From: Botryllus schlosseri
Lineage: Eukaryota
Assembly (NCBI GenBank): GCA_051294905.1
Contig: CM119371.1
Span: forward strand, 34,968,001-35,032,000
Reading direction: 5' to 3'
DNA length: 64,000 nucleotides
Numbering within the stretch: position 1 is the stretch's first letter; each line of letters starts with the position of its first letter. Position numbers and translations under genes: made by a program. Below the pieces are notes generated by a model, which was given only the letters and a program-made list of their open reading frames with translations, had not been told where the DNA came from and did no database searches. This document shows positions 1,303 through 44,206 of the stretch, one piece after another.

Positions 1303-1360
1303 TTCTAGACTTTGCTAGCGGACTTACCGATGACCCAATGAGATTACGAAATCTGAGGGT
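1303..1360 (+). pseudogene. 3' remnant of a SNORD97-like box C/D RNA
   Basis: TTTGCTAGCGG..CCGATGACCCAATGAGATTACGAAATCTGAGGGT aligns with the 3' ends of the copies at 6135 and 7036. The guide has two substitutions, no box C is found upstream, and it abuts the Penelope fragment. Confidence 0.6.
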
Positions 1361-2845: not shown

Positions 2846-5800
2846 CCGATGTGGGTTTGGGACGGAGAGAACGGCATGGTTAACCGAGAAATCACCTTCG
2901 TTCCGGGGCTGTACAAGATCTTCGACGAAGTTTTGGTGAACGCTGCCGATAACAAGCAGAGGGACCCGAATATGTCGAAGATAAGAATTGATATCGACGG
3001 GTAAGTCAGAATTAGGGGGTTGCGAATGTTGAATTTGAGGTAAGGTTGTACAGTAGGGCTCTTCAAAAATGACTTTTTTCTCAAATCGTACTGGCTAGGC
3101 CTACTTGATAAAATTGTTAGGTTACCTAATTTAAGCCTACACACAAAATTTGGTTCAATTCCAGCCATTAACCGCTTTGCTACAGGAGAAGAAAGTTTCC
3201 ATTTATAGTATAAACATAAATAATGAAAAATTTGTAAATTTTCTGTTCACCCCATGAAAGTGTTAGGCTGTCTAGGCTATAGAAACGATGTAAAATTATA
3301 GCAAAGAAACAGTTCCCGAATTGAATTGCACAATTAGATTACAAGCATTTCTCACTAATTAGCCCCAAAAAACTAGAATTTTTAATTGTCAAATCTGACC
3401 TGTACAATAGGGCTCTTCAAAAATGACTTTTTTCTCAAATCGTACTGGCTACTTGATAAAACTGTTAGGTTACCTAATTTAAGCCTGCGCACAAAATTTA
3501 GTTCAATTCCAACCAGTGAAAGCGGAGTTATTGCCGTCGAAAATTTTGGATTTGAATAAAATAGTAGCCTATTTACAGTGAGCACCACAACTATAACAAA
3601 TAAACGAAGAATCGGTCACCGTAGATACTATTTTAGTCAAATCCAAATTTTTCGACGGCAATAACTCCGCTTCCACTGGCTGGAATTGAACCAAATTTTG
3701 TGTGTAGGCTTAAATCAGGTAACCTAATAATTTTATCAAGTAGCCAGTACGATTTGAGAAAAAAGTCATTTTTGAAGAGCCCTATTGTACAGGTCAGATT
3801 TGACAATTAATAATTCTAGTCTTTTTGGGCTAATTAGTGAGAAATGCTTGTAATGTAATTGTGCAATTCAATTCGGGAACTGTTGCTTTGATATAATTTT
3901 AATTCTAATCTAATCTCTGCTGAAAACCCTGCAGGGAAACCGTATGGTGCGGAACGAGCCAAGCTTGGTTTACGGATATCTGCCGTTCTCATGCTTATAA
4001 GATCAAGGTTTGATATGATGATATGAACTCCAATACTGAATTCGAAAAAACTTGGAATTAAATTCCGGGTGAGGAAGAAATATTGCTATTCTGGTTACAA
4101 TCGAATTTGTGAAATATTTCCATGCTCTCATTATAATTCCAATTTAATATCTGGGTATCCTCTTGATGCTACAAGTGAACTGTACAGTGTGAAACCATAG
4201 TGTCCTATATGGTGTCGACACAAGCAAATCTCACGGCTCAGTGAAATTGTATCACGTCACAATTTCCATTTGGCTACAGGCAATTTGACGGTCATTTTTG
4301 ACCGGCTTGCCGAGCATTAAATTTGGTAAAACGGGTATCAATCGAAAGCTGACTCTGCACTGATGATGAAAATATAAATTTTATTCCGCTCGCGGCCCTG
4401 GAACCCCCACAATCAGCCTCGAATTTTTCATTGTTATGGAGATTGGCATTGGGACGCAACAATGCTGTCTGGCTCTTTTTCTCTTGAGCTATTCTCTCGT
4501 TTCGCCAGACAGCATTGTTGCGTCCCAATGCCAATCTCCATAACAATGAAAAATTTGAGGCTGATTGTGGGAGTTCCAGGGCCACTAGCGGAATAAAATT
4601 TATATTTTCGTGATCAGTGCAGAGTCAGCTTTCGATTGATACCAGTTTTACCAAATTTATTGCTCGGCAAGCCGGTCAAAAATGACCGTCAAATTGCCTA
4701 TAGCCGAATCCAAATTGTGACGTGATACAATTTCACTGAGCCGTGAGATTTGCTTGTGTCGACACCATATAGGACACTATGGTGAAACGATCCCAGCTTG
4801 CTGTTTAGAGATTTGCTATTATCGCGCTCAAAAAAGCTTTTTCTCGCAAATTCGGAATTTGATGAGATTTCAAAGTTTTTGCGAATTTAATGCTTCTAAT
4901 TTTAATCTAATTTGGAAATAACTGCCGCTGTAGTTCTAGTGTAATAATATGTAGTTGTCTTGCAGAGAACGCAACCTGATCTCGGTATGGAACGACGGCA
5001 AAGGCATACCCGTGGTAAAGCACAAGGGAGAAAAACTCTACGTTCCCGAACTCATTTTCGGACACCTGCTCACCCCCAGTAACCATGACGACGATCAAAA
5101 AAAAGTCACAGGTAATTTTCGAGAGCGGACTGATTGTCTCGCGACGTTTCGGGCTGAAACGGGTGTTTTTTGTTGTGTTCAGGCGGCCGTAACGGATACG
5201 GGGCGAAACTGTGCAATGTTTTCAGCACCAAGTTCACTGTGGAGACGTCTTCGAAGGAATATAAGAAAAAGTTTAAGATGGTGCGTGATTTGGTGAACTG
5301 TAACAGAAGTAGTCGAATTAGTCGGCTATCGGAAGTGTTCTAGTCCTAGTTTTGCTCAAGAAACTGAAAAATCGGCAAAATGCTATGAAAATTGGTACTT
5401 GCATACTGACCACTGGGGCTGTTTGTAAAATCACTTTTTTTACAATTTTTGCACCTATTTGATAAAATTAGTAGGTTGGCTAAAAATAAACGCTGCACCC
5501 CAAATTTGGCTCAATTCCAATTTGTAGATGTGAAGCTACGGGAGTTTGAAAATTCTGAATTTATTATAAAAAAAAACATAATTTCTATTTCAAAGTTTAC
5601 TGTCCACTCTGTGAAAGTGTTGAGTTGTCTACGAAAACGATGTAAAACAAATCTGACGCAATTCCAACCCGTAGAAACGAAGTTATTTAAGCTTTTCATT
5701 CTGGGATTACCTACCGTCAATGTTATTTTTGCTAAATCCTAAATTTTCAACTCCAATAACTACACTTCCGTCGGTTGGAAGTTAGCAAAATTTGTCAAGC

Positions 5801-8800
5801 ATTGTACTTGTAGACAATTTATCAATTTCATAGGGTTGGCAATAGAATTTGTAAGATATATTTTAAGTGTTCTTATAACAATTTCAAATTGTTCAAACTC
5901 CTGCAGCTTCACATCAACCGCTTGGAATTGAGCCAAATTTGGTGTGATACGTTTTTTTAGCCAACCCAATAATTTGATAAAGTAGCTGCAAAAATTTTTA
6001 AAAAAGTGATTGAACAACCCTACTGACCATATGTGAATATAATAATCTTACGTGGATATAGCAATCTTATGACAATGACAGCTAGTCTATATTCAGTCTC
6101 GAACTACTTGGACAAGTGCCTTTGTGAAAATCTAAGCTCTGTGATGACAGCAATGCCTTGAGGAAGCTTGCCGCGATCAAAGCCTGTTCTATAGAGACAG
6201 ATTTCTAAACTACGCGAGAGGTAATTGGTTCTAAATTTTGTGGTCACTCTAGGCCGGGCTTTGGTTGCGTGCGGCTCCGATGACCAATTGAGATTATGAG
6301 ATCTGAGGGCTGGTTATAATTTTGATTATCGTGGATCGGTTGTTATTGTTGAAAAGGATTGACTGGCTCGGTTTTCAACAGGTTGTGTTTTTCAGACGTG
6401 GACTGGTAATATGGCGCAGGCCGGGCCTATGAAGCTGTCGGCCAACGATGAAAAGGATTACACGTGTATCACTTTCACGGTGAGCATATGGCAGTATTGC
6501 TTTTTGCTTATCGTAGCTATGATCTCCATAATTACAGATTTCCAGACCCCTTCAAAAGAGCGAGTCATTTAACATAACCCAAACTAACCCTAACCTTGCA
6601 TTAGTACAGGCCTAGACTATATTTTTCTTCATTTTTAGACAATGCTCTCAGCTCTGTTCGAATAAACCTCACTTGATGGGTATTATAGACACTGGAGTGA
6701 AAAGACGTGCAAAAAAATGCCTTCTCCAAAGTTACCCTGAATGCTGGAGTAATTTTGGACACAAATAATTAAAAAATATACGCTACCGATGGACGAACAT
6801 GAAGATTGTGAACCAGCTAAATAGCTAATTCTAATCTAACCCCAGAAAAACACAAAACTTCTTCCTCCTGTGCCAAAATAGTTGTCAAAGCTGAAAATTT
6901 TGTAAACGTGGGTTAAAGGTGGTGTTAGCGGGATGGTAGCTGTTAAGTTGGGGGTGTGCTTGTCGAATTGTATGCTCCACTGTAAGTTAACCGTCCCAAT
7001 TATGTGTTCTATAATGCAATGCCCGCTCTGCTGCTTGCCCAATGATGACAACCGTGCCTAGAGGAAGCCGGCTGCTTTTGAAGTCCGGCCCAGCGGACGC
7101 TTGGCACGCCACTTTGATCGTTAACTCGATCTGTGTTGTCCAGTGACCGCGGGGCTCTACTTTGCTCGCGGCCCTTCCAATGACTTTATGAGATTATGAG
7201 ATCTGAGGGCAGCGGTGATTGGTGATGTAATGTTTTGATTTCGATGGAAGATAATGGCGCTAGTCTCCGTGGTAATGTGTGAATAACAGGACTGGGTCTT
7301 GTGGGGTCGTGCTTGAAATCTGTCAGATAGTGCCGATAGCTCATTTATCAGTTCGAAATAGTAATTTTTCTATAATAAAGCGAGTATGGTATCCTCAAGT
7401 AATTAAGGGGATCACTAACATTGGAAATATTGTACTTAAGCTCAAAATGATTCTACTTGATGGAAGGGATCATTATATAGCTAATTTCACAGACACTGCA
7501 ATAACTCCTAGATTTAGCCTGGTATTAAATACTCATTTATCAGCTAAATGTAGTATTCAATATACAGTAACGCAAATATGGCACTTTCGTGTTATTTAGG
7601 TGTCTAAGAACTCGTCCAAATGTTTGTAATAATGCGCATAGCGACTCTAGCTGATTGGAAGAGACCTATAACCCACTTTATCTTGCTAATTTTGTGAACA
7701 ATTACTGTGATGCACATTGGATAAGCGCATTGGTTTTAATGCAAAGTTTGTGGAATTGGAATTTCAGCTGTCGATTTTCTAATTATTTATTAATATAGCT
7801 TCGAGTAATCGAAATCTAATGCAGAAAATGTCAAAATTCTCTATTCTTGAATAGAAAAAGTCAAATTTATGTAGGTACCAGTAATTGGTGTCTGTTTCAA
7901 TGTGTTAATATTTTTTCAGCCCGATTTGAAGAAATTCGGCATGGACAAATTAGACGCGGACACGGTGGCGTTACTGTCTAGACGCGCCTACGACATTGCC
8001 GGGTCAACAAAAGGCGTCATTGTCTATCTCAATGGCACTCGGTTACCGGTAAGCTGTCGAATGCTTTACTTCTTGCTCCGAGACTTGTAAAACCTTACGA
8101 AGCTATTTCTGCACCTTCCTTGTGCGGCGGCATATGCACATGATGCACTCACGGTGTGCATGTGCACATGAACCGCAAAAACATCGCGGACAAAAATATG
8201 AAATGTCCCATTTCGGTGATTGAATCAGTCTGACGTTGATTGTTTTAGGTGAACAATTTCAAAGATTACGTCGAGCTATACACGAAAAAATGTACGGATG
8301 AAAACGGGGTTCCCTACGAGACGGTGTATGAAAAAGTGAATCCGCGTTGGGAAGTGAGTAATTGCTGTACTACGGTAGTAGCTTGATGTATATATGCAGA
8401 AGGGGTCAATAACTAAGTTCTTTACTGTCTCAAAGTCCTTGTGTGGATTTTGCCTGCTATCCAGCACATCAGCAGACCACGTCCTTGCGTTTCCGTGCGG
8501 CGTCGTGGGGGAAGAATATTCAATGTGCGATATTACTTACTTTAAACCATTCGCAGAATGTCTCTGACACAGTCGGGATAATTCTATTGCCCGGGTTTCG
8601 TACATGAATTGTATATGAAGCAATAGATTATGTAGATATAATTGTGATTCAAATCTAATTTGGATAAGAAACTAGCTTTAGTTTTGATTTCAATCTAATC
8701 TGGAAAATTGTGTATCTATAACGCTAATTGTAAACTAATTTTGAAATAAACGGTATCTATAATTCTGATTTGTATCTAATCAAGAAAACTGTGTAGCTAT

Positions 8801-11800
8801 AGCTCTAATTGTGAACTAATTAATAAAAAAAACTGCATAACTATCATACTAACTGTAATCTATTCGAAAAGAAACTGTAGTTATAATTCTAATTCTAATC
8901 TAATTTGGAAAAACTGGGTGGTTATAATTCTAATTTTAATTTAATTTGGAAAAGAACTGTAGCTGTGACTCTGATTGTAAACCCATTTGGAAAACAATTT
9001 CATAGCTATCATTCCAACTTTGATCTATTTGAAAGAAACTAAGTTGTAGTTGTAATTCTAATTCCAAACTAATTTGAAGAAAAAACTAGCCATAATTCTA
9101 ATCAAATTCGAACAAACTGTGTAGCTAAAATTCTAATTTTAATCTAATTTGGAAAAGGACTGTAGCTATAGCTCTGATTGTAAACTAATTTACGAAAAAA
9201 ATGCGTAACTGCCATTCCAACTTTGATGCCAACTGTGTAGTTATCATTCTAATTTCCAACTAATTTGAATAAAACTAGCCATTATTCTGATTCTAATCTA
9301 ATTCGAACAAAATGTGTAGCTATAATTCTAATATAATTAATAATAAATAATGCAAGACTCTTGACGGCCAAGACCAACATTTCATTGTAATTTTGAAGAA
9401 TAGTAAAGTTACATCGTGATTGGTACTTCGTCTATTAGTACTGGCTCTTGAAAATGTGACCAAAAACTGTTGAAAGTGAGGAAAATTGGTATATTTTGAA
9501 TGTGAAACATTCAACTCTACCAAGCAAGAGTTTTAAAACGTTGCTTTGGTAAGATATTTACTGAACTGACTTGGACTTACGGCTCTTGACTTCCGCATTG
9601 GAATTGATACTTGATTCAGGTTGGAGTACTGAATCATTGCGCTCAGCCCTTCATAATACGACAATAATAACAACATATCATCTGAAATCTCGACTTAGCT
9701 GCGACTCTGAAGCGGTTCCGTCAGTCGCCTACCCTTTTTTAGGTTTGCATCACCTTATCGAAAAAAGGTTTCCAGCATTTGTCGTTTGTGAACAGCATAG
9801 CCACTTCTAAAGGGGGCCGGCACGTAGACTACATCACCGACCAGGTTGTGAAGAAAATATTGGAGATTGTGAAGAAGAAAAACATAGGCGGAAAGGGCTT
9901 CGATGTTAAGCCGTTCCAGGTAATTGCTTGCGTGTTTCTTGTACAATGTAGCGGTGTTGGTTTTGGACTCTTGAAGAATATTTCCATCGTGGTTTCAAAT
10001 TTTATCTCTTCTCTTCATTGCCGCTTACTTTTCCAGATCAAGCATCATTGCTGGATTTTCGTTAACTGCCTCATCGAGAACCCCACGTTCGACTCGCAAA
10101 CCAAGGAGCGCATGACGTTGGCGGCGAAGAAGTTTGGATCCACTTGCGCCTTGAGCGACAAGTTCCTGAAATCGGTGAGTGTTTAGAGATGCTCAGTAGG
10201 GTTGTACAAAAATGACCTCTTTTTTGGATTCTAGCCATTCACTCATTAAATTGTCAGGTTACCTTAAAAAACGCTGCACACCAAATACATACCGTAATTT
10301 TCCATGTATAATCCGCAAAATTTTCACAATTTTTCGTCCTAAAATCGAGGGGGCTCGTATTATACATAGGAACAACACGCTTGAAAAAAATCTCCCTCGA
10401 TAAAAAACTTGAAATCACACCTTTCTTCATGTTTGTTTCCAATCGCGCATCACTATCATCCATCGCCCAGTAATTCGTATTATCAGTGTTATGCGCTGCC
10501 AATTAGCATAAAGCGTTTTGTCAATTAACGAGAGTGGTCTGCACAGCACGTAATCTCTTGCTGAGTTGGTTTGCCGTTTGCACGCGAGCGTCGTTAATAG
10601 AATGCTGAATGTGCGCGCGGGCGGCAATCCTCGCTGATTCATCGATAGGCCATGTGCGCAAAATATAATCGCTTGCGTAATCAGTCGCACCTCCCGACAG
10701 GCGTGGTGTGCACGACATGACCGGTGGCCTTAGCAATCGCATCTGACCTTGTGCTCAAGATGTCGCGTCGCTGGCCTCGCGGGCTTTGGCTGCTATCTAC
10801 TATCGTATAGAGGCCATACCGTTACTTGTATAATGATTAGCAATCGCATCTATACTAGGCCTCGTGCGCAAGACGTCGCGTCGCCAGGCTCGCAGGCTTT
10901 GGCTGCTCTTTACTATCGTTTAGAGACAATGCCGTTAATCACATAATGATTAGCGATGGTTATGTCATGATTGTTCGACAGTGACATCGCAAAACAGAAC
11001 AACATCTTGTACTAAAACACAGCTATTCATGTACTGCGAATGCAGGGTGCGTACTATACATGAGACAGGCTTTTTCCCAGAATTTACACGCTATTTTAAG
11101 GGTCCGTATTATACATACGGGGGCGTACTATACTTGTAAATTACGGTAATCTGTCGCTGAGCCAATTTAAATTTTCAAGCCTGATTGATATTAGAATTTT
11201 GACTCGGTACAGATATCGTTTACGTTTCAACCACAGTAATTTGACTAACACATCCTGTAGGCTATTAATTACATGTTCTTACAATCAATTTCTATCTGAG
11301 TAAGAAACTTGTGAACTCTGTTAGAACTGGCGAACTCTATGAATCAATTCATAAGATATCCTCGCTGATGCAGCCTGTATTTTCTGCCAGTATCAAAATG
11401 TGACGTAATACGACTAGGAGTCTACTTTTTGCAATTCCGTCGCCAAACCTCGGATTTTGACCCGATTCGCGTTTGCAGGCCTCATCGTGCGGTATAGTGG
11501 ACGGCGTCATGAACTGGGTGAAATTCAAGACGCAGTCGCAGATGTCCAAGAAGATGTCCGGGGCGAAATCTAACAAGATCAAAGGTCGCACCACGTCATT
11601 TTTATGCCATTGTTAATCACTTTAAATTATGTTTTTTTTAATGAAATTTTTTTCAGTTGTATTTGTTTGGGCATTTTGACACATGATGACTATTAAAAAT
11701 TTTTATAAACTTAGTAATTGTTTATAATTTATTTTGTCAGGCATTCCAAAACTGGACGACGCCAACGACGCCGGCACCAAGCTGTCCCAGGACTGCACCC

Positions 11801-14800
11801 TGATCCTGACCGCGGGAGACTCGGCCAAGACGCTGGCCGTGTCGGGGCTCTCGGTGGTGGGCCGTGACAAGTTTGGGGTGTTTCCGCTGCGTGGTAAATT
11901 GCTTAACGTGCGGGACGCGACCCACAAGCAGGTGGGTCCGATTTTTTTCGCCCCCTCCTTGATTTACGCTAGGCTATGTCTGGGAATGATTATATCGGAT
12001 GACAGAAGGCTAAGTGTTTTGTCGATGAATGTTCAAGTATTCATACTGTATGACCCAGATTATTTACTAGGGCTGGAATAAATAGAGCGTCCGATTTTAT
12101 GCGTGGTAACAACCACTTGAAAACTTTCACAAAATCTGCACGAAAATATTGCCTGTTACGAATATTGCGGTTTCCAAAATCATTGTTTCCCAGGGTTGTA
12201 GCCAAATCACAGAGCTCCGAGTCACAAGTCAATCCCACTTATATAGTTTTGACTCGAGTCAAGTCGAGTCATTTTCAATTCACCACCGAGTCAAGTCCGA
12301 GTCCAAGTCATCGAGCAGAGGTTCGAATGACTCGAGTCCGAGTCAAAGTCAATATACAATGTTCTTTCCAATTCTCTACTAGTGGCTGACGAGTGTCAGC
12401 CAAAAATATTCGGAACATACTATGCAATTGTATACGCAAGTCAAAATGTCCGTGTTACGGAATCTGTTCTGTATAATGGCACCGATTTCAGGTGGTTCAA
12501 ACCTCTCGTCTTTTATAAGTGAAGCCTTGGCGCACATCTTATGACGGTTATGTTCAAGTATTAGCGGAATTCAATTACGCACGCACGTCGCACATATGTC
12601 GCATGCCACATACCTAAAAAAATGTCATGCGTGGCATACCTTGCATACCCAGGTTCTGCGCCTATGACTGTGATACATATTCATTCAACATGGCTATGAA
12701 TATAGCGCTGTGTTATAATGTCGCGACGCGAGATGTTTCAATAAACATGCCTAGCCTTTGTCAATATAGAACTGATGTTTTTGTGTATTTAATATGGATT
12801 TTATATCTCTGTGCTTTCAATATGGTGTTGTCAGTCATAAAAGCTATTACCTCACGCTTTTTGCATCATACCCACTGCTTCAGTTCCTAATTCTACCTAA
12901 AACGGTCTAAAAATCAATGATTTGCTTACAACTTTTCTTCTGTATATTTCGAAGACCAAGCTGTGCGGAAGTAAGATAGAAACTTGTTGCTTCCGCATCT
13001 TTTAAGCCCGAAATCAGCTTTCTAGCGTTAGCGGTTATCGGTATAGAGCGAAATTAGATGTTTTTGGCTCGTTCGGTGAAATTGCACGACCACTAGAGGG
13101 TGCATGAACCAAAAAATATAAATTTTTTGATATTTGGCAGCAAAATTTTCCATTTTTCATTCCACCCTGTCATGCAATGTATGTCTCCTGTACCGTCGTA
13201 AAGCAAATGTAAGTTTCCGAGCATTGATTGTGAAAAAAGTGTAAAAACGATGATAATTCCTGTCTAGTAAAATATTTCTTCACAGTTTTTGGCAAGACTC
13301 TTGGACGTACAGAGCTTCATTATATGCTTGAATAATATATTCATATTGAAATAAGACCCAAATGTTTTCGTATTTGTCAGCGTCTCGTATTTGTCAGATC
13401 GTGGAGAACGGCGAGATTAACAACATCATCAAGATCATGGGACTGCAGTACAACAAGAAGTACGCCGACGAGACGGACGTTAAGAGCCTGCGTTACGGGA
13501 GACTGATGATTATGACAGATCAGGTAATGGCCTTGATTCAAACCTTGCTTTGAGAACATTACCTGTAATGATTAGACTTCGGTGCAGTATACCTTATGTA
13601 GGTACATGACTGTTAAACTGTATTCATACTGTCTGAACGGGGGCTGTCTCTGACCGCGGTGACATAGTTGTTTGCGTGCGGAACAATATGTTATCGTCTA
13701 TGTGTTTGGGTTTCAGGATCACGACGGATCTCACATCAAAGGCCTGCTGATCAACTTCTTGCACGCAAACTGGCCGAAACTGCTGCATCAAAGGTAGGCG
13801 TGCCGATTTTGTTACCAAGTCGCAAGGTTCCGAGTCGCGAGTCGATCTTACTTGTATAGTTTTGACTCGAGTCAAGTCGAGTCATTTCATTTGGATACAC
13901 CACCGAGTCAAGTCCGAGTCCAAGTCAGCTAGTAGAGCAGGGCTTCTCAGTTAGCATCCCAGTTGTATTTTGTGATATGACGATAAGGGGGGCGCGAAAT
14001 TTTTCACTATCAAAAAGGGGGGCGTGTCTACAAAAAGGTTGAGAACCACTGTAGTATAGGGTCGAGTCCAAATAGTTTCTGGCCCTATTTACCAAGTATC
14101 AGTGCCGATAGACGAAATACCAATATTGCGGTGACTTAACTATTCTTCGGAGTTACGATGAAATGTCGGCCTTGAATTGCTGAATTCATAACAACTGGGT
14201 AATTGACTCCAATTCGCGTGCTGCTCTATGCTTGGTCCCTGCTTTCTGCCCTGCCGGTGAATACAAAACTGCCGGCAGGTTTCATAAACAGGGGATATTG
14301 AACCGCAGTATGCATGTGCAAAATTTCCATCGGTATGGAAGGCGTTGCATTTAGCTTACTACATTTAAATTCGAAAAATTCTTGATGAAGGAGCAGTCCT
14401 CTAAAAGTTTGTGTAAATTTTGCTTTTCGAGTGGACGTTGAATAAGGTGTGAAAGCAACCAAGATGCTGTCGGCACCCTGTTCCAAATATGATAGAGTCT
14501 GAAATTGCCGTTGAATATGTGTGCAAAACGTTGTAACAGCAGCCGTTATCCGCGGAAACGCACGGTATTTGAACTGCAGCTAAGAGATACCAAATACGAT
14601 GTACGATGGATTGGTCAAAATAAGTTAGGTTCATATCAAATCACAGTTATGAAAACGGTAAAATGTCTGTTGATTAAGGGTTGTAATGACTCGAGTTGCG
14701 ATTTTCTGATTGTAATTTCGAATAGTTAAGTAACCACACTATTGGTATTTCGTTCATTGGTACTGGTACTTGAAAACGCGACCAGAAACTGTTGAAAATG

Positions 14801-17800
14801 AAAAAAATTTGTATGTTTTAAATGCGAGCCATTCGATATCACCAAACGGTGATAAGACTTCAACTCGGAAACTGAGCAGTAGGGCTGTTCAAAAAAACCT
14901 TTCTCCAGATTTCACTGGCTACTTGATAAGATTGTTAGGTTGGGCAAAAAAACGCTGCACGCCAACTTTGGCTCCATTCCAACCAGTAGAAAGTTTTAAA
15001 TTAATGATTGGAAAATGAAAAAACAAAATTTCAAAATTTTTCTGTCAACCCCATAAAATTGTTAGGCTGTCAGTAGAGACAATGCACACCAAATTTGGTT
15101 CAATTCCAACCACTAGAAGCAAAGTTATTGCAGAAAAATTGTGATTTGAATAAAATAGTATTTACGGTGACCAACTCTTCAATTATTTATTATGAAATAG
15201 TGGAATTGGAAATTTTTCTACTGCTATAACTTCCCTTCTAGTGGTTGGAATTGAGCCAAATTTGGTGTGCATCATCTCTACTGACAGCCTAACAATTTTA
15301 TGGGGTCGACAATAAAAATGTGAAATTTACATGTTCTATTTTTCAATGATAAATTCAAAACTTTCTACTACAAAAACCTCGCTTCTACTGGTCGGAATTG
15401 AGCCAAAGTCGGTGTGCAGCGTTTTTTTCACCAACATAACAATTTATCAAGCAGCCAGTGAAATCTCAAGGAAAAGTTTTTTTGAACAGCCCTACTTAGC
15501 AGTCAACGCGATGGCTTGGACTCGGACCTGACTCGAGTCAAAACTATAAACGTGAGCTTGACTTGTGACTAGGAGCTTTATTAGAATGAGTTATGTTTTT
15601 GGCTTGTAATCGCTTTGTAATAGTTATTTAATAGTATATTCGTGTTGAAATCTAGCCAAATATTTTCGGTTGACGCTCGTCAGGGGTAATCGTCAGCAGC
15701 TAGTAGAGAATTGGAAATAGCATTTTATGTCGACAATCGCATTACCTAAAATAACCCTGAACGCGTAATTACGTTTCGTCCAGGGTGGTGGAAGAGTTTA
15801 TCACGCCCATCGTCAAGGTGTCCAAGGGCAGCCAGGTCCTGTCCTTCTATTCCATCCCGGAGTTCGAAGGCTGGGAGAATTCCACGGCAAACTCGAAATC
15901 CTGGAAAGTGAAGTACTACAAAGGTTCGAATTTTCACTTGGATTTGAATCTAGGATCTGAAACAAGACTTTATTTTCAAAATATCACAAATGCCGGTACT
16001 TATTTTGGCGCTTATTCCACTCTGGTAAGACGTAGAAAGAAAGTTGTCGTATTAAATTTGTGTGATTGTTGAGTTTAATTTAAAAATCCCATTTTTGTAT
16101 CAACCATACTGCTTCAAAGTACAATTTGCAATCATTTTTCTAGTGTAAACGGAATACTTCATGGATTTTCAAGTCCGCCCCTCCGTAATTTTGTTTCATT
16201 CGTAACTTTTTTTCATCGAGTTTAGAGCGAAAAAGTCGATTTTTTCAAATTCCTGGGCCCCAGAATTTTATAATTGGACATTTTAATTGGTTCTCTACCA
16301 TCGTTGAAGCGAAAAATATCGATTTTAAAGAATTTTGCATGCAGTGCCAGCTAGTGGCAGGATAATTTTGGATGGCGTTATCTTTTGAACCGCTAAAATT
16401 TTTGAATGTGCTCGGAATTTGAAAAAAAGAACAACCTTTGTAAATAACTGACAATTCTGAGGGTATGCATTACGAATGTCGGAAAATTTGCTAAGGTATA
16501 ACGGAATGAGTCTGCCGTGGAAACGCTCTCTGGGACTGAAACCGATTCCCGCTCTTTGACAGGTTTGGGCACGTCTACCGCGAAAGAGGCGAAAGAATAT
16601 TTCGCAGACATGGAGCGCCACAGGATCCAGTTTGAATACGGCGGTCCCGCCGACGACGGACATATCGATTTGGTGGGTGTTTTGCGTACATTTTCAAGAC
16701 AAAGTTCTATGGAAGTGAGATAGAAACATTGTTGCTTCCGCAGATTTTAAACCCATAACTGGCTTTCTAGTGCAGTGGTTCCCAAACGGTGGGGAATTCC
16801 CCACTGGTGGGGAATTCAATGGTTTCTGGTGGGGAATAGACGCATTTCTTCAAAATTGTATACAGGACAGTCGACATATTCACGGGCGCAATTACCGCTA
16901 CCAGTTAACTGCTCTTGAATGTATGTATCGGAAATTATATTGCGTGTTGTTCACAAAACCTCATTTTTGACTCTGGATGGCCAATGATGGCGTCACAAAC
17001 GCATCCAGCACGGCTAATTTGACGTGAAATAACGCTTTCGCGAAATTATGAGCGTTATTGGTATCGGTTCACGATTCGTTTTATGTTGCAGTAATAGGCG
17101 ATTTTCTTGCGTACTGGTGTGGTTGTGTGTCTTGTGTAGTCAAACCAGCAAACAGCTGCTCTGTGATGACAAAAGTGCTGGGTAGTGAGGAACAGGACCG
17201 TAACTGCCGCACCCAAGACCCCCCAATTGGGGAGGGGGCGAGCTCGAAGGGGCCCAAAATTATTTCATGAATTAACATAATTAAAGTATTCTTTTAGATT
17301 TATGCCACTTTTTCGAAAAATTTTCGCGCTGCGTGCGCGATTTAATATTGCCGAATATCTGATTATTGGCCACCCTTCCCCCACGAAACTACGTAGTAAG
17401 GCGACGCACTAAACAGTAGACCCAATGCAGCTGATAAGTTGCAGGGAAAAGCGTACAGGCTCAGCGGGGGTTCTGGGGGCCCAGGAACAACGTTTTTGGG
17501 CGGGGCTGACAAAGAGCGGTTACGGTCCTGGTGGGGAATGAAGGCTCGGAATAAATCTGAAGTGAGGTATGAAGACAAAAAGGTTGGGAATCACTGTTCT
17601 AGCGTGAGCGGTTGCCAAGATACTACAAAATTAGCTATTTTGGGCTCGTTCGGTGAAATTGCTCGGTCACTGGAGGGCGTAAGAAGCTGAAATCATGATA
17701 GAAGCTGTTCATTTTAGATTTGGGACCAAATATCAAGTGTCCTTTTTGAAATTCCAATTTTTTTAATCACTCCACCCAAGTGCAGAGAACTGGACGTTGC

Positions 17801-29800: not shown

Positions 29801-32800
29801 CGGGTCGTACCTGTTCTGTACTTGTCGCTTGTATGTTCTCAAACGACACGTCTTGAACTTTAAGTCAAAACGAACATGTTTCCAGCCCTAAAGTTATCTC
29901 ACGAAGTTCTGGATCAGTTTAAAATTTGATGTTTTATTTATTTTATCAATGTAAAAGCCTTCAACATTGCATCTTGAATTTAAGGTATAGAATTGTAATA
30001 TACCTGGCGGACCGGCAAGAATGTCGTCGCGGCGGTTGAGGACCGCTGATGTAGACGACATTGTCAGAATGAAGCAACACGGTTTGTCACCAGCAGTGTA
30101 CGCACTACTTGAGTGTCGTCAGCCAACATCTGCTGCTGTTAAACGTTCTTTCTCCATTCTTGGCAAGCTATTTAGTAAGGACAGACGCTTTCTACCCGAG
30201 AATGTAGGAAAGTTTTCTTTGTTGTATTACAAATAATTTTAATCATTTCTACTATAAAGCGTAATATAACTATTGGAATTCATCGTAGGGCCAGATTTCG
30301 TTAAAATGAAGTTTTTTTCACGTAAAAATTTGACAGTTTTCGATCAAAGTTTTTTTCAGGCCAAACTACTTCCTAAGGACAGACAGTTCCAACCACGTAC
30401 GAAGATAAGTAGTACAATTCTAACGTGTGAGAAAATGCCTAGTTTGCGTACGTTCGGTCAAACTTGGTCAAAATTAAGTTTTTTGAGACGAAAAAACGTC
30501 AAAATTTTGATTCGCCAAGTCAAAATTGAGTTTTTAGGCCAAAAAAATCGATCTGCTCATTACACTTTACGTTTCTATGCTTCAGTTTTGATTCTAGTGT
30601 TATTGGATATGTTACGGGAGAACGGTATGGCGCGAAATGAACCAAACTTTGTGTGCGGACATTCGCGATGCCGAACTCTGACTCAATATACACTGGTCTT
30701 GGATTTAGTTGTGTACAGTAATTCTAATTGTAATATGATTTGGAGAAGCTGAAAATTCTCTGCTCGTCTACAGTCTGCCAGGCTTTTGCAAATTGCGCTG
30801 GGATTAGAAGTGCGGCTAAACCGTTTTTTTTCTTCGAATTATAGTAGAATTAGAATTGCAGCTACAGTTTTTTTACAAATTAGCTTACGATTAGAACTAG
30901 GCTACTGACATTGAATCGGTATGAAAACACTTTACAAATTAGATTTGAATTGGAGCAAACAAGCATTTCATTAACTAGACCACAGGCGTTTAGCTCTTGT
31001 TAGTCGTGTTATACAGTTGACCTGGTCTGAACATGACTATATGACTGCAATTTGCCACCTGATAAATATCGATGAATTTTTCTGCCCAGAAACTCGCAAA
31101 CGACGAAGGCGCGGAATCGGAAGGCGAGGAGACGAACGGCGGCGCGGACTTCAATTACATTCTCAACATGCCGCTGTGGAGTCTGTCCATGGAGAAAAAG
31201 GAAGACCTCTTAAAGCAGGTTTGCCGCGTTTGCTTTTGCGATTGGGCTGCTAATCGATGAATGCGGGAAAATACATTCCCAGAGTTATACTAAGGATCTC
31301 AAAGTGTCTACTTCTGTTTGATTATATCACATCTGGCTTCATGCGCGGGTTTGTTATCGAAAACTTCCGTTCTCTAGTCAGCATGTTTGGCCCGTTTGAG
31401 TCGCCTGTCATGCGTTACGAGGGTGGTAGAGTGAGGCGCGTCGGCTTGTCATGAATTTCGGAGGCTGTTTTAGCCTCGGGAGACCTTGACGTTTGGGGCG
31501 CGTAAGTTTGCGAGAGTGGACGGGCGATTATTGTTTTGGGTGTCGCCCGTCTAGTCTGATAACCGACATTTTCCCTGTGTCGGTTCGCATTTTGGTGTGA
31601 TTGCCGATTTTGTTCTAAAAATATGTAACCTTTACAGAAAGATGCGAAGCAGACGGAGCTCGACGAGCTGTTCGGGAAGACCCCGTCGACATTGTGGCGC
31701 GACGACCTCGACAAATTTATGGAGGAATTTGAGGTGAGATTTTGAGTGTGGCTTTGAAAATTTTTGCTCCGTTTCTACGTGACTAAGAAATTTCCGTGAT
31801 TTTTCTTTCGTATTTGATCTCGAGTCAGTTTTTGAGTTTGAAAACGTGATTTTCGTGATCGAGTCGGCGGGAATGAAGCCAGATCAGCTGTGAACTATTC
31901 TATTGTACAATAGGGGTGTTCAGAAATGACTTTTTTTTTCAAATCGTACTTGCTACTTGATAAAATTGTTAGGTTACCTAATTTAAGCCTACACACCAAA
32001 TTTGGTTCAATTCCAGCCGGCAGCCGCATTGCTACAGGAGAAGAAAGTTTCTATTTATTATATAGAAATGAAGTAAAATTTGAAAATTTTCTTTTCGCCC
32101 CATGAAAGTGTTAGGTTGTCTGTAGGAATGATGTTCACCAAATTTGGTTTATTCCAACCCGTGGAAGCGGAGTTACTGCCGTCGAAAAATTTGGATTTAA
32201 ATAAAATAATATTTACGGTGACCAATTCTTTAATTGTTTATTATAGGTGTGCGAGTGTGCCCACCGTAAATACTATTTTATTCGAATCCAAATTTTCCGA
32301 CTGCAATAACTCCGCTTCCACTGGCTGGAATCGAACCAAATTCGACGTGTAGGCTTAAATTAGGTAACCTAACAATTTTATCAAGTAGCCGGTACGATTT
32401 GAGAAAAAATTCATTTTTGGACACCCCTGTTGTACAACTTGACCATTTGACGAATGGAATCGAGCCAAATTTGGTGTGCCACCTAATGATTTTATCGAAT
32501 AGCCAGTCAAATTTGACCTAAAAAGCTGCGTTTGGACAGTTGTGGTCTTGTGCGCCTGGTTTCGTGGTGCAGTTACAAATGTAAAGTTGCTTAGCGCCGC
32601 AAATGATGTTCTCACGATGGTCTTCATAACATGACGTGATGATAATTTAACATTTCAAGACTGATGCGGATAATTTAACCTAGGTATGTAACCTGCGGAT
32701 GATGCTCTGATTTTCACTGAAACTATCGTAGGCTGTCGTTAATCGAATTGTCGATCTGCAGAAAATGGAGAAGGCCGAAGCCAAGAAAGCCGGGTCGGCC

Positions 32801-35800
32801 GGCAGCCAGGGCAGGGGCATACTGACCGAGGCCGTCAAGGCTGAAGTGTTCCCGTCGCCGCACGGTGTCAGGGTGACCCCGCGGATTGACCTTGCCAAGC
32901 CGCTCGCCGGGGGGAAAAGGGGAAAGAAGGTATTGGGGTTTGAGGGTTTCGGTCAAGTTTTTTCTTTAAATTACGGCCGATTTTTTTTTCATATCGTAAC
33001 GTTATTTTCGCGGAATTATCGGTCGATTTTTTTTATGACCGGATGTTATTTTCTTGGAATTTGTGGTCAATTTTGGAAATTTCGATTTTTCTCGAAATTT
33101 TTGATCGGATTTTTTGAACGCAATGTTGTTTTCCGAAGTTCTTTACCCGCTATTGCCTTACTACCGATGTTACTTTTGGTATTTACGGTCACTAGTTTAC
33201 GTCTGATTTTGCTTGCCTGTGTTTTCAGGCGATATTTTTTGATCTTGATGTTTTATCCGAACATTCGGTCAGCTTTAGAAATTTCGATGTTTTCCCGGAA
33301 TTTGCGGTCGATTTTCAAAATTTTAATGTTTTCTTGGAAATTTTCCGGTTAGAGTTTTTGAACGCGATGTTGTTTTCTGGAATTTTTAGTCACTTTTTTC
33401 GAATCTAGATGCCGATTTCTTTAAATTTTCTTCCTGAATTCTGAGAGGCGTACAATAATAAGGGTAGTGTCCCCTGTAGAAACGCAGACCATAGCTGACG
33501 GTGTACTGGCTTTTGATCGAAAACCTGGCCTGTTTGCTTTACTTTTATTATCTTAATTGCAGGCTAAAATCGAAGACCCCACCGTCAAAAAACCGGACTC
33601 TCATTTCGTCACCGCCAACAAGAAATTAGGTATGCTACTTCCTGCTCTCGTGTGTTTTCATCCTATTTTTGTACTAATTTTTCTAGAAACTGTATCCATT
33701 CTCTAGTCAGCATGTTTGGCCCGTTTCTGTCGCGTGTCATGCGTTACGAGGGTGGTAGAGTGAGGCGCGTCGACTCGTCACGAATTTCGGAGGCTGTTTT
33801 AGCCTCGGGAGACTTTGACGTTTAGCGCGCGTAGGTTTGCTAGAGTGGACGGGCGATTGTTTTTCGGTATCTCCCGTCCTAGTCTGATAACCGACATTGT
33901 TTTGCGGAATAAAACTCTCGTCTTGGAAATATGTTTGATGCGAATTTACTACAAAAAATCTGACGATAAAGATGTAGCAAAACATATTCAACTGCATCTG
34001 CAGGCTTAAAATAAGGTTGAAATAACCCCCGCATTAGGGTGGAGTGAAAAAAAGAAAATTTTGAATTTCAAAAAGTGCCTCTGATATTTGGCCCCAAATC
34101 AAATATGAATAACTTCTATCATAATTTCAGGTTTTTACGCCCTCTAGTGGCCGAGCTTATTCACCAAACGAGTCGAAAATAGCTAATTTTGCCATATCCT
34201 GATAACCGCTATGCTAGAAAGCCAGTTTTGGGTTTAAAATCTGTGGAAGCAACATGTTTCTATCTCACTTCCATAGAACTTTGTCCTGAAAATGTACAGA
34301 AAAAAAGTTACAAGTAAAATTGCCGATTTTTAGACCGCCATTAAAAGTGTTGGATGGTTGTACCAAATTTGCAATGCCGATTAGCATGTTACTGTCTGTT
34401 GCATTGCTGCTTCAACAACGAAATCTTGTTTGAAGGACTTATCAGTTGATTTTTATATCAACCAAGTATAATTTGGATAGTAGAGAGCATGATTGAACTT
34501 TCTTCATAGTTGCAAAGGAGCTACATGACCATTGGATTTGGTGCAATATATTTTCCATAAATGAGTTCCTATTGCGCGAAAAGTCAATAAACTGATGTTG
34601 AAATTTAGTCAACTAACTCGGTATCACTTACAGGAGCTGCTGCTGCAACTTGTGTATTGCAAGATGTTGGAATAATCAACTAAAAAAGTGATTCGTTTGT
34701 GGTAGATCACGGCAAATTACGAGGAGAGAGAGAAAGGTGTAGAAAAGAAATACAAAAAAGAGAAGCAGAAAACTTAAATCTTTTGTATGGACTCTACTTC
34801 GATGGAAGAAAAGATGACACTTTGAATATGGTTGAGGCACCCACTGGAAAATGCTCTATGACAACAGACCTGGAGGAACATATTGTTTTAGTAGGATAAC
34901 CAGGTGAGTATTACCTCTGTCACTTGTCACCTCCCAATGGAAAAGGTCGTATTTTGGCAAAAATATATCGGTTTATTTCTAACACCGACCTCTGCAAAAT
35001 CCCAGCTGTTGTGAGATCAGACGGTACAGCTTCAATGACAGGGAGATTCAAAGGCTGCATTCGTGCAATGGAAGAAATTTTACAAAGACCACTTCAATAG
35101 GCTATCTGCTTGCTTCATGATAATGAGCTGCCATTCTACATATCCGCCTTGAAAGTTGTAATTTATAATATTGTATTGCGTGTTTGAATTACGCATTGCT
35201 GTGAAAACATATCTTGATGGCAGCTCATTACCATGAAGCAAGCAGATAGCCCATTGTAGTGGTCTTTGTAGAAGTTCATTGCACGAATGCAGCCTTTGAA
35301 TCTCCCTGTCATTGAAGCTGTACTGTCTGATCCCACGACAGCTGGGTTTTTGCAGAGTTTGGTGTTGGAAATAAACTGATACATTTCTTGGCAAAACACG
35401 ACCTTTTCCATTGGGAGGTGACAAGTGACCGAGGTAATTCTGACCTGGTTCTCCTACTAAAACAATATGTTTCTCCAGCTCTGTTGTCATAGAGCATTCT
35501 CCAGTTGGTGCCTCAACCATATTCAAAGTGTCATCTTTTCTTCCATCGAAGTAGAGTCCATACACAAGATTTAAGTTTTCTGCTTCTCTTCTTTGTATTT
35601 CTTTTCTGCACCTTTCTCTATCTCCTCGTAATTTGCCGTGATCTACCACAAACGAATCACTTTTTTAGTTGATTATTCCAACATCTTGCAATACACAAGT
35701 TGCAGCAGCAGCTCCTGTAAGGTCCAATACATTATACCGTTCACAAACTCTTGCCAAGTTGATCCCCAACACATGGTTTTGGTTTGATGGTTGAGCACCT

Positions 35801-38800
35801 CCCATAAAAGTTGAATCATTACCAGAAGATGTTGATTAAGATTGCATTGACTCTGAATCACTTTGATTAAAGCTGAATTGCCCGATAGAAGTGCTGGCAC
35901 CTGCATTAGAATCACCGGTTGTTGGATTGAGCTTGACTGCCTTCGAAATCTTTCGTCAGCTGATGAAAGAGGCACAGCGTCAACCAAACCTTTTCCCTTG
36001 CGCTCTGCTTTCTGATCTTCAAATCTTTCGGTGCCATTCTTAAGCCACATTGGAGTGCAATTTTATCTCTCTGTTTGCTATCGCAGCAGAAGATGCCAAA
36101 AAGCCTATCAATATCTTGCAAGAACGTAGTTTCCATTTCTTTATAAGAATTTGATGTTCTAGATTTCTTGTGATACCGAGTTAGTTGTCTAAATTTCAAC
36201 ATCAGTTGATTGACTTTTCGAGCAATAGGAAACTCATTTATGGAAAATACATTGCACCAAATCCAATGGTCATGTAGCTCCTTTGCAACTATGAAGAAAG
36301 TTCAATCATGCTCTCTACTATCCAAATTATACTAGGTTGATATGAAAATCAACTGATAAGTCCTTCAAACAAGATTTCGTTGTTAAAGCAGCAATGTAAC
36401 AAACAGTAACATGCTAATCGGCATTGCAAATTTGGTACAACCATCCAACACTTTTAATGGCGGTCTAAAAATCGACAGTTTGCTTGTAACTTTTTTTCTG
36501 TACATTTTCAGGACAAAGTTCTATGGAAGTGAGATAGAAACATGTTGCTTCCACAGATTTTAAACCCAAAACTGGCTTTCTAGCATAAGCGGTTATCAGG
36601 ATATGGCAAAATTAGCTATTTTCGACTCGTTTGGTGAATAAGCTCGGCCACTAGAGGGCGTAAGAACCTGAAATTATGATAGAAGTTATTCATTTTTGAT
36701 TTGAGGCCAAATATCAGAGGCACTTGTTGAAATTCAAATTTTTCTTTTTTTCACTCCACCCTACCCCGCATACGCGATAATGTTGTTAGGTTGGCCAGAA
36801 CGAAGTCTTCCGCACCAAATTTACTCAATTTCAACAAATAGAAGCGAAGCTATTATAGTTTACAAAATCTACTTGTATATTCTTCCAATTTTACAGGCAA
36901 CACAATGAAATGTTGAGTTATCTAGAAAAAAACGATGTGTAGCAAATTTACCTCAATTCCAACCAGTATTATAAGTTATGTTGTTGGTGTTCAAAAATTT
37001 GAATTTGAAATTATGGTACTTGCAGTGGGTCGGGATAATAATTAATGATTAAATAATTTTTGAATCTAAAGCTTTGTACTGCAATAACTCGTGTTTGGAA
37101 ATATTGTTAAAATGTTTTTCGTTCGTCTGTTCAGTGGCATCTACCAGGGAAAAGTTTCTTCGTTATTCCTGAAACTTTGATTTGTGTTTATAATCGCGAA
37201 TGCCTTCCAGGTATGGACATGGACGTTGACGATGATGTCGACAAGCCGCTGTCGCTAGCTGAAAGGGTCAGTTTGAAGAAGGGCTCTGAAAACGATAATG
37301 AAGACGAGTGAGTTTTTGTTGCGTTGCTGCGTGCGCGACGGTCGAGGTTGCAACCAAGTCACAAGGTTCCGACTTTTAGAGTTTTGACTCGAGTTAAATC
37401 GAGTCCAAGTCGACTAGCAAGGGGTCGAGTCCGGGTCGTAGTGTGTTTTGACTTGAGTCCGAGTTCAATTTGACTCGAGTCATTTTAAGCATTTGAAAAT
37501 ATGACTCGAGTCGCCAAAACAAAATCGTGACTCGAAGTCATCACAATGCTAGCTGCGATATGCGCAACATGGAAACTGTAATTTTCTAGTTTTGTATTTT
37601 AGCCTGACCTTTCTGTACAGGGATGCTGTCGACTTGGACGATAATGACCATGGCGCGGAGGAGTCCTCCAAGAAGGCCGATCCCTCTTCGGACGAGATTA
37701 TGGAGCTGAAGTCGCCCTCTCCCGTCGCTAAGGTGTGACGAGATGTTAGTCAAAATTTTTGGCTGTGTAATAGGGCGGTTGTTTTATGACATGGCGAAAA
37801 GTTGGAATTTTGTCAAAATTGCAGAGTTAGGCCGCGCAAAATATTTACCAAAGGGAAAAATTTCTTATGCATCCGAACTGTGTTTGTGTCGTAGAAGTTG
37901 CGCTGTCTGCGCACCAGGCTTGGCCGAGTTGTAGTCTAATTTGTGAAATACTTCTTTGCTCCAATTTCATTCCAATTTCTGGTTTTCCTGCAGATTCTGC
38001 GTGATAACTGTACAGTAGGGCTGTTTGAAAAAAAAACCTTTTTCTTCAGATTTCACTGGCTACCTGCTAAAATTGTTGGGTACGTGAAATCTTCGCTGCA
38101 CACCAAATTTCGCTGAAAACCAACCAGTAGAAGGGAGATTCTTGCGCTAGAAAAACTTCTAATCAAAGAGTTAGCCACCGTAAATACTATTTTATTCAAA
38201 TCCAAATTTTTCTACTGCAATAACTTTGCTTCTAGTGGTTCGAATGGAGCCAAATTTGGTGTTTATCATATCTACTGACAGCCTAACAATTGTATGGGGT
38301 TGACAGAACAAATTTGAAATTTAACTTATGTTTTAATGATGAATTTAAAACTTCCTACTGCAAGAAAATCTCTTCTAGTGGTTGGAATCGAGCCAAAGAT
38401 AGTGTGCAGCGTTTTTTTAACCAACCTAACAATTTTATCAAGTAGCCAGTGAAATCTGAAGACACAGTTTTTTTTTTAACAGCGAAAGACTGTGGCAGTA
38501 ATTGTAATTCGGGGAAAACTTTGTAGCTGTAATTCAAATTGTGATTTGATTTCATCAAAATTGACAACGTTCTAGCGGTACAGTTTGTCTTCAAGTGCCA
38601 AATTCTAGTTTTTGTCAATCCAAATCCTCGCTCTCTCTGGTGAAATCACGTGAACCGCGCGGTGCGGTATTGCGAATCTGGCTGATTTGGCATTTGCCGG
38701 AGAAGAAACACTTTTGGGTTGGTGCTTTCGGTTTAAAAACCCCGATTTTCGTCCTTGCAGAAAACCCGGGCCAACCGAAGGAAGCTGCCGAAAACGGGGT

Positions 38801-42458: not shown

Positions 42459-44206
42459 CACTACAATTTGAAAAGAAAAAGTAGACGGGACATCGGTTTT
42501 CCAAGCAACTCCTGTGAAACGTGACATTTTTTGCAAAGTTATCTGAATAAATTACCCGTTTATATGTGTGTTTGCCGCCTTGCAGGGGGCGCTAGCTACA
42601 GATTAGGGGAGAAGGGGGTGCTGAGAGTAGATGTGGACGATATGGTCTATGGCAGGGGCGGGCTACTTATCCAGTCAGCGGGCCGGATATGGGAAATTGA
42701 AGTACTTGGCGGGCCGGATTCCTGAATCGATACATCATTAATCGTGTATTCATCCACCTATTTAGAAGGAATGAATTGCATTTAATGTATGCATAGCGAC
42801 AAAAAACACTAGTCACAGGCTGTGAGTTGCCTACCCTAGAGCTATGGGAAACCTATAAGTTGATAGGTATCCCTGTGCACCAAATTCAGATTTAAGAACA
42901 CCGTATGTGGTCACGTCGTTAGCGTCACCAATTCCCTTCGAACATGTTCATGTTCATTGTCATGCAGCATTGAGTTTTCTAATCAATCAAATAACGAATC
43001 GACTAATTATTCAGTGAAACTTATTGAACGCAAGTGATGAGCACACACTCAAACGCTTGTACAACTAGGGCGATGAAGTTTTGAGCGCATTTTGCACAGA
43101 AACAAAGTACAATGAACGGGAAGAGAAATTGCCTTGCACGATTGTTTAAACCAGTGGATCTTAAGCTGGGAGGCGCAAAGCCGCAGTAAATTCCTCCAGC
43201 TCATGGTTGTTGCTCTGTCTATTGTCCGAATTTCATAATTGAGAAGTTTCTCATCAACAGGCATAACCTTCAATGGCAATAAACTATACTTTACGTTTGC
43301 AAGCATCCTGATTGCTCTCATTAATATTACGTTATATCACGTTAAGGGTGGGTGGGGTGAAATTTTTCACTATCATAAACCCAGCAAACACAGAATATAT
43401 TGCATATATATTGTGTATATGTCTCAACTACTTGAAAATATATCTAGTCATATGTATTGTTTATATAAATCTGTCGACACATTTGCACATATATAGGATA
43501 TCTTCAATGATACCTGTATGACATTGTCATCATATCTTGCTTGACCCTAGATGACCCCTGACCCTAGGTGACCCCTGACCCTAGTTAGGTACCTGGACCT
43601 GCCACATCCTGCAATGCCCTTATCAAGGAAGACTGACTGATAATTTTACAAATCATGCATGGCTTTGTTCGTGTATTAAATCAGCACAGAACTGCGCAAT
43701 CACTTCAGCAAATATTGCTGCCTAAGCATAAGTTCGAAATCGTTGTCGGAATTGTCAGACTCTGTGATGACAGCCTTGTTCCTGTTATCTTCTTTATCGC
43801 CACCCTATAACATAAACGAGTAGATTAGTACAATTGATTATTATCACTGTAGAATAAAAGTTTTTCTGTGTTTGGTTGTGAGTAAAGTGGGATGGTGGTC
43901 TAAGTCACATTCACCAAAAGCGACATGACCTTTACTTTTACACTGAAGATATAATCAACGCAGTTACGCTGTCAAGATGAGACACCAGAACCTGTTCAAT
44001 AATGCCTGTCATTATAGAGATGATTTTCATGCTATTGGCGTCATGAAGTGGCTGCTGCTGGAAACGGATTTCAAAACCTATAGTTTGGGCACTAGGTGAA
44101 GATTGTTCTCCACATTATTATTTTATTGTTAATATGGTAATCGTTGCCTGTGAGAGGCTGATGTGATATTGATCGCTCCTTCCATGCACGACACAGCAAA
44201 TATATG

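Follow-up and report, generated by a model that had tools for sequence, protein, structure and literature searches.

The stretch of DNA analysed here, 64 kb of contig CM119371.1 (hereafter the window), carries, on the + strand between roughly 2.8 and 41 kb, open reading frames that read as TOP2. Within two consecutive introns of this gene lie two RNA elements, copy 1 (6135-6311, +) and copy 2 (7035-7211, +), both of which are 177 nucleotides (nt) long and lie on the sense strand of TOP2, in line with what an earlier note on this DNA had described. Both have the anatomy of box C/D small nucleolar RNA (snoRNA) genes of the SNORD97 type, and we consider it likely, though well short of certain, that they are intron-encoded members of the SNORD97/SCARNA97 family, whose human representatives guide methylation of the anticodon of elongator methionine transfer RNA (tRNA-Met).

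A pair of probable box C/D RNA genes in TOP2 introns

The two copies share one layout, in which box C is followed by a short spacer, a D'-like box, a middle of about 115 nt, a C'-like box, the guide and box D. A box C of the form RUGAUGA, a CUGA box D and a terminal stem are present in each. In copy 1, box C reads GUGAUGA (6141-6147), the D'-like box is UUGA (6158-6161), followed by the GGAAGC that opens an internal hairpin, and the C'-like box is CCGAUGA (6277-6283); the antisense element AGAUUAUGAGAU, which is the complement of positions 30-41 of tRNA-Met(CAU), occupies 6291-6302 directly before box D (CUGA, 6303-6306). The corresponding elements of copy 2 are AUGAUGA (7042-7048), UAGA followed by GGAAGC (7059-7062 for the D'-like box), CCAAUGA (7177-7183), the same AGAUUAUGAGAU (7191-7202) and CUGA (7203-7206), all of these features being on the + strand. 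The terminal stem of copy 1 is formed by AGCUC on the 5' strand and GGGCU on the 3' strand (5 base pairs, bp), and that of copy 2 by UGCCC and GGGCA (5-6 bp). The outermost pair is compensatory between the copies (A-U in copy 1, U-A in copy 2), and another pair also differs, being U.G in copy 1 and C-G in copy 2.

The copies are 76% identical in the 5' module and 83% identical in the 3' module, compared with 42% in the middle, and the intron sequences on either side of them share no similarity. This contrast between modules and middle, set in dissimilar flanks, is the mark of purifying selection acting over a long time to preserve the functional modules in each copy. The earlier note had reported diverged middles together with retained boxes, terminal stems, a TGCCT-GAGGAAG block and an identical guide, and each of these can be read in the sequence, the block lying at 6154-6166 in copy 1 and 7055-7067 in copy 2. 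With GC contents of 0.48 and 0.55 respectively, copies 1 and 2 form GC-rich islands in introns of 0.34-0.39. The 12-nt guide AGAUUAUGAGAU occurs at only these two sites across the 64-kb window, and the 16-mer of guide plus CTGA gives two exact matches where 0.08 would be expected by chance at up to two mismatches. A strict C/D scan of the + strand of the window (RTGATGA, CTGA and a stem of at least 5 bp) returned three candidates in total, two of which are copies 1 and 2. Exact-product look-ups of the open reading frames within or adjoining the two copies gave no match.

The predicted fold of both RNAs consists of the closed terminal stem and a single long irregular hairpin between D' and C', which in copy 1 spans 6162-6277 as judged from the fold and from the mapping of allelic differences. 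The hairpin is closed by GGAAGC/GCUCC in copy 1 and by GGAAG/CUUCC in copy 2, and since it closes there, the TGCCT-GAGGAAG block can be understood as the D' box plus the foot of the hairpin. Compared with shuffled sequences, the stability of the fold is clearly higher for copy 2 (z -3.29) and mildly so for copy 1 (z -1.24). The middles contain 51% (copy 1) and 58% (copy 2) pyrimidine and so are not the pyrimidine-rich kind of the vertebrate members. On the folding model, the long middle represents a hairpin expansion of the interval from D' to C' and takes the place of the vertebrate pyrimidine-rich spacer, and a hairpin middle of this kind is a new feature for the SNORD97 family.

Copy 1 lies in intron A (5281-6395, +) and copy 2 in intron B (6480-7919, +), and between them is an 84-nt TOP2 exon (6396-6479, +) that aligns to residues 193-219 of human TOP2A and whose spliced junctions on either side are carried by RNA contigs. 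The next exon, 3' of intron B (7920-8054, +), aligns to residues 221-264 of human TOP2A (E 2e-12), and its junction is carried by a contig from run X9. Both copies are thus intron-encoded, in sense orientation and within an expressed host. The distance from the end of the RNA to the downstream 3' splice site is 84 nt for copy 1 and 708 nt for copy 2. A distance like that of copy 1 is reportedly the classical one for efficient processing of intronic C/D snoRNAs, a view ascribed to Hirose and Steitz in 2001, and because of this position copy 1 is probably the main producer.

A third, incomplete copy is found at 1305-1359 (+), ahead of the earliest TOP2 exon recognised in the window. These 55 nt correspond to the 3' module in a profile of copies 1 and 2 (nhmmer E 7.4e-8); a mismatch-tolerant search for the guide also landed within it (AGATTACGAAATCTGA at 1341-1356). 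This relic keeps a C'-like CGAUGAC, CUGA and GGG, and its guide differs by two transitions, AGAUUACGAAAU (AGATTACGAAAT), but its C-box region is degenerate (GTGAGGC) and it has no terminal stem. From its sequence we read it as a dead copy, which would mean that copies at this locus arise and decay. We considered whether it could be a retargeted guide, facing the C of a CGU anticodon, and ruled this out on the loss of the C box and terminal stem.

Other elements of the C/D type are hinted at elsewhere in the window. The third candidate of the strict scan (38329-38464, +) is 136 nt long, with AUGAUGA, CUGA and a 5-bp terminal stem. Exact repeats of 14-15 nt of the copy 1 5' end (GCTCTGTGATGACAGC-type, comprising the stem and C box) occur at 17158-17171 and 43760-43774 (+), and these may either mark where further C/D RNAs begin or be mere fragments.

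The predicted target and the wider family

Over positions 30-41 of the published elongator tRNA-Met arm the guide pairs without a break, in 12 pairs (11 Watson-Crick and a terminal G.U), one more than the 11 bp that had been noted before, and C34 lies opposite the guide nucleotide five positions upstream of box D; this holds also for the Ciona sequence given in Suppl. Fig. S4 of PMC6601510. The calculated energy of the guide-tRNA duplex is -15.2 kcal/mol, compared with a mean of -3.6 for shuffled guides. The same figure shows no variation in the tRNA-Met arm GUCUCAUAAUCU between human, Ciona, insects and plants, and the tRNA-Met genes it lists for human, Ciona, Drosophila, Bombyx and plants all have GTCTCATAATCT. 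Human SNORD97 and SCARNA97, which reside in EIF4G2 and LARP4 and were correctly described in the earlier note as guides hosted by other genes, have been demonstrated by knockout to make together the 2'-O-methylated C34 (Cm34) of elongator tRNA-Met(CAU), and this modification limits cleavage by angiogenin (Vitali & Kiss 2019, PMC6601510). The D guide of copies 1 and 2 is therefore predicted, from complementarity, to select C34 of elongator tRNA-Met. We also sought a target for the D' guide and rejected the one candidate, as the copies share only UGCC, differ at the fifth position and have a complementarity of 4 nt to the tRNA D-arm.

Homology at the level of the family is evident from the ends of the RNAs. 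The D-box element AGAUUAUGAGAU is the same in copy 1, copy 2, the Rfam SNORD97 consensus and 11 environmental members. A metagenome scan with a 21-mer gave no matches, and a shorter pattern of the guide plus NTGAGGG (19 positions, 18 of them fixed bases) gave 41 loci, which were thus retrieved by the guide itself. At least 15 of the matches combine a C box with a GCCC/GGGC-type stem, delimiting RNAs of 153-253 nt. In an alignment of 13 sequences (copies 1 and 2 with environmental members), five elements do not vary, namely box C, the UGA within C', the guide, box D and GGG. At the D'-like position the environmental RNAs have CUGA, AUGA or UAGA followed by GG, and the GAGG block recurs. Their middles are mostly 62-75% pyrimidine, as is also typical of the human RNAs, with two (L027 and L045) at about 50% and so similar to copies 1 and 2. 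Since the environmental members are long and mostly pyrimidine-rich, the length of the RNA is a trait of the family and the structured, non-pyrimidine middle seen here is a variant. The identities of the modules assign neither copy 1 nor copy 2 to either vertebrate paralogue.

Pairs of such genes were also seen amongst the environmental sequences. One contig (L048) carries two SNORD97-type genes 1.1 kb apart (28-280 and 1173-1420, both on the - strand), and one metagenome holds two diverged SNORD97-type copies (L022:326-496 and L031:742-913). Local duplication of the family is thus seen elsewhere as well.

RNA evidence and the possible roles of the two copies

Four sequencing runs bear on the expression of the locus, three older ones as assembled contigs and one as raw reads. 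As spliced TOP2 junctions are present in the three contig runs, we take these to represent RNA. In run X9, contigs cover copy 1 from 6135 or 6144 to 6310 or 6311, and a 31-mer at a depth of 27 ends exactly at 6311. The k-mer depth in this run reaches 27 over copy 1, compared with 6-13 over the adjacent exon, and there is no cover from 6312 to 6385. These data lend moderate support to copy 1 being a stable RNA that stops at its predicted 3' terminus. A second allele of copy 1 carries five substitutions and a 3-nt insertion, all of them in the middle, sparing the boxes and the guide; two of the substitutions (6174 and 6275) turn G-C pairs of the hairpin into G.U pairs, and the other three fall in predicted loops or unpaired positions. 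The inserted trinucleotide is TCA and sits right at an internal splice site (6220|6221).

If the two genes work as established box C/D biology would have it, each RNA would be freed from its TOP2 intron after splicing, and exonucleases would trim it down to a box C/D core protected by Snu13, Nop56, Nop58 and fibrillarin. The 12-nt element upstream of box D would then pair with positions 30-41 of elongator tRNA-Met(CAU), and fibrillarin would add a methyl group to the 2'-OH of C34, which lies opposite position five of the guide, converting it to Cm34. We infer the assembly of a small nucleolar ribonucleoprotein (snoRNP), the methylation itself and the presence of the conserved arm in the species' own tRNA-Met.

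A number of observations weigh against this account of the pair and need to be set beside it. At the Rfam gathering threshold, neither copy gives a SNORD97 match. In a permissive Rfam scan, which took in the SNORD97 model as had been proposed beforehand, the outcome was divided, as SNORD97 (RF01291) is the best match of copy 2 but at 18.6 bits (gathering 45; E 2.8), and copy 1 has no Rfam match at E <=10. SNORD97 was the better of two weak Rfam matches in the region, the other being to an unrelated bacterial small-RNA model. The alignment of copy 2 to RF01291 extends over the full length of the model and reproduces the ends, UGCCC...AGAUUAUGAGAU-UGAGGGCA, but it matches the ends only, with the middle elided (86 model positions against 128 nt). 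Because the whole middle is elided, we regard the sub-gathering score as a limit of the model, whose seed we take to be vertebrate, rather than as an exclusion. At the RNA level, one contig on the 5' side of copy 1 runs on into a flank that is only about 75% like the window, which we take for another, diverged haplotype. A cryptic, consensus-like 5' splice site within copy 1 (GAGAG|GUAAUU, 6220|6221) is joined to the exon at 6396 in X9, so that some transcripts exonise the 5' half of copy 1 and part of the depth over this half belongs to a messenger RNA (mRNA) isoform, which is probably unproductive. Contig cover of copy 2 overruns both of its ends (6955-7181 and 7166-7281+) at a depth below that of the exon, and looks like precursor; its distance from the 3' splice site counts in the same direction. 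A contig from run X14 has a 7045 A>T change at the fourth C-box position of copy 2 (AUGAUGA to AUGUUGA). In the established box C/D structure the fourth C-box nucleotide is a partner in one of the kink-turn's two sheared G.A pairs, and the variant may be a loss-of-function allele. The raw-read run placed 0 reads on the window, and the evidence from contigs is indirect. Finally, a tRNA scan found no tRNA genes in the 64-kb window, and the arm with which the guide was compared is the published one.

An alternative is that only copy 1 works and that copy 2 is a decaying or poorly expressed paralogue, following the path of the relic and tolerated because copy 1 suffices. We think this less likely than two working genes but give it serious weight. 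The 708 nt that separate copy 2 from its 3' splice site, the contig cover that passes both of its ends at a depth under that of the exon and the natural change of a kink-turn sheared G.A partner in its C box are all in keeping with this idea, and the relic shows that copies decay at this locus. In human cells SNORD97 and SCARNA97 are sufficiently redundant for a double knockout to grow normally (PMC6601510). On the other hand, copy 2 as found in the window has perfect boxes, guide and stem in spite of a middle that is only 42% identical to that of copy 1, and to keep these intact whilst the middle diverged requires long-term selection. Its hairpin is also more stable than shuffled controls, and contigs from which rare forms are dropped can show presence but not absence. 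Taking both copies as genes of the family, copy 2 is probably a redundant paralogue.

It is also conceivable, although we consider it unlikely, that the tRNA-Met guide was duplicated independently in this chordate to give copies that differ in localisation, timing or stress response as set by their distinct hairpins, with their production coupled to the proliferation-linked TOP2. If this were true, wobble methylation of tRNA-Met would track cell division.

A division of labour of the vertebrate type, with one copy nucleolar and the other in Cajal bodies, was suggested in the earlier note and is quite improbable in light of the sequence. It has in its favour that the two diverged paralogues share a guide, like human SNORD97 and SCARNA97, and that it is the middles that differ strongly, the middle of human SCARNA97 being the part that carries the localisation signal. 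Yet a Cajal-body localisation element, whether a G.U/U.G wobble stem made of UG repeats or a pyrimidine tract like that of SCARNA97, was found in neither copy 1 nor copy 2. Neither contains (UG)n or (GU)n of three or more units, pyrimidine runs reach at most 5-7 nt, and the middles, at 51% and 58% pyrimidine, fall below the 62-75% of most family members. In Ciona a single gene was reported, and the split has been dated to early vertebrates (Vitali & Kiss, PMC6601510); the module identities likewise tie neither copy to a vertebrate paralogue. With neither signal of a small Cajal body-specific RNA in either copy, and with copy 2 lacking evidence of discrete accumulation and subject to the C-box A variant, the suggested parallel is unsupported.

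The guide might instead be directed at another RNA (ribosomal, small nuclear or messenger), or be an orphan, with the match to tRNA-Met incidental. The conserved UGCC upstream of D' has no assigned target, and the ribosomal and small nuclear RNAs of this species lay outside the comparison, which leaves some room for this. However, the guide and the tRNA-Met arm are both invariant across very distant eukaryotes, the D' guide region differs at the fifth position between the copies, and a published screen of stable human RNAs pointed to tRNA-Met as the target, with knockouts abolishing Cm34 (PMC6601510), so we regard this as very improbable. A chance arrangement of motifs with no gene behind it is hardly credible given two exact 16-mers against the 0.08 expected at up to two mismatches, each with its boxes, stem and C'/D' architecture, and both on the sense strand of introns as GC-rich islands in AT-rich sequence.

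The TOP2 host and comparison with known systems

The exons that flank the two genes align to human TOP2A and are joined in spliced contigs, so the identification of the host as TOP2 agrees with what had been claimed; amongst full-length TOP2 matches, that to a vertebrate TOP2A is the best (56% over a single exon). For comparison we used TOP2 loci from five other eukaryotic assemblies (L006, L007-L009, L010, L052 and L053), which cover the homologous exons at 70-87% amino-acid identity, a sample that leaves out the closest match, P0157 (exon 89% identical). None of the five loci contains the guide at up to one or two mismatches or an nhmmer match to the profile of copies 1 and 2. Two of the loci (L007-L009 and L053) lack intron B and a third (L010) has only a short one; intron A is present. 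No TOP2 exons were found beside the metagenome family members. On these sequences TOP2 hosting appears lineage-restricted within a five-locus sample that has no confirmed close relative, which shows only that it is not general. TOP2 is apparently a new host for the SNORD97 family.

Other features of the host gene deserve mention. Further Rfam snoRNA-like matches occur in TOP2 introns, all in sense orientation on the + strand, namely at 11980-12058, 31366-31570, 32598-32673, 33695-33898 and 40171-40245; they comprise one SNORD41-like match (25.7 bits), two SNORA74-like matches (50 and 59.8 bits) and two to SNORD35 (41.4 bits, which is above threshold, and 34.6 bits), so that on sequence matches TOP2 looks like a multi-snoRNA host gene. 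In the TOPRIM exon (11740-11934, +), the homologous exon of TOP2 in L005 and L010 reads LILTEGDSAK, and comparison of this motif therefore indicates a change of the catalytic glutamate to alanine in an otherwise open and spliced TOP2. Sub-threshold matches to the plant microRNA precursor models MIR1514 and MIR4416, at 4429-4548 and 15102-15254 (+) in TOP2 introns, are probably repeat-derived hairpins.

To our knowledge, snoRNA-guided modification of tRNA in eukaryotes has essentially one experimentally proven case, that of human SNORD97/SCARNA97. Copies 1 and 2 are new members of this family in a new host gene and bring no new mechanism. What is new here is the TOP2 host, the presence of two intact copies with a decayed third, and the hairpin middles. 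The locus therefore adds a well-defined gene pair in a genetically tractable invertebrate chordate, where the prediction of Cm34 becomes testable, and it tells us something of how the family evolves: it changes host genes (EIF4G2 and LARP4 in human, TOP2 here), it duplicates and decays locally, and its middle can be a hairpin in place of a pyrimidine tract.

That the guide system, as a predicted guide, is conserved in this invertebrate is correct as had been proposed, but it is not new, because Vitali & Kiss (2019, PMC6601510) reported apparent homologues in all vertebrates examined and single candidates each in Ciona intestinalis, Drosophila, silkworm, honey bee and plants. The Ciona, insect and plant candidates (Suppl. 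Fig. S3C) resemble copies 1 and 2 in being non-vertebrate members with the invariant guide, and differ in that there is one gene per invertebrate genome, as opposed to two intact copies and a relic here. If the genome is that of a sea squirt, the Ciona intestinalis candidate, with which we compared our copies by description only, is the nearest published relative.

Human SNORD97 (U97; Rfam RF01291), in intron 13 of EIF4G2, has the same 12-nt D-box element, the same intronic sense location and the same predicted C34 target; its UGCCC/GGGCA terminal stem is common with copy 2, and both RNAs are unusually long for the C/D class. It differs from our copies in its host, in its length (142 nt compared with 177 nt), in the D box of the Rfam consensus (AUGA, compared with the canonical CUGA of copies 1 and 2) and in its pyrimidine-rich, unstructured spacer, where copies 1 and 2 have a GC-rich hairpin. 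Human SCARNA97 (SNORD133), in intron 10 of LARP4, has the same guide and target and is likewise a second paralogue in one genome, but it is 216 nt long and contains a 93-nt pyrimidine-rich tract needed for Cajal-body localisation, which is absent from copies 1 and 2. Further afield, an archaeal C/D small RNA (Joardar et al. 2011, cited in PMC6601510) also directs 2'-O-methylation of the same tRNA position through a C/D ribonucleoprotein of the fibrillarin type. Unlike copies 1 and 2, the archaeal Cm34 guide is short and does not lie within an intron of a gene for a protein, and the likeness drawn here is one of function.

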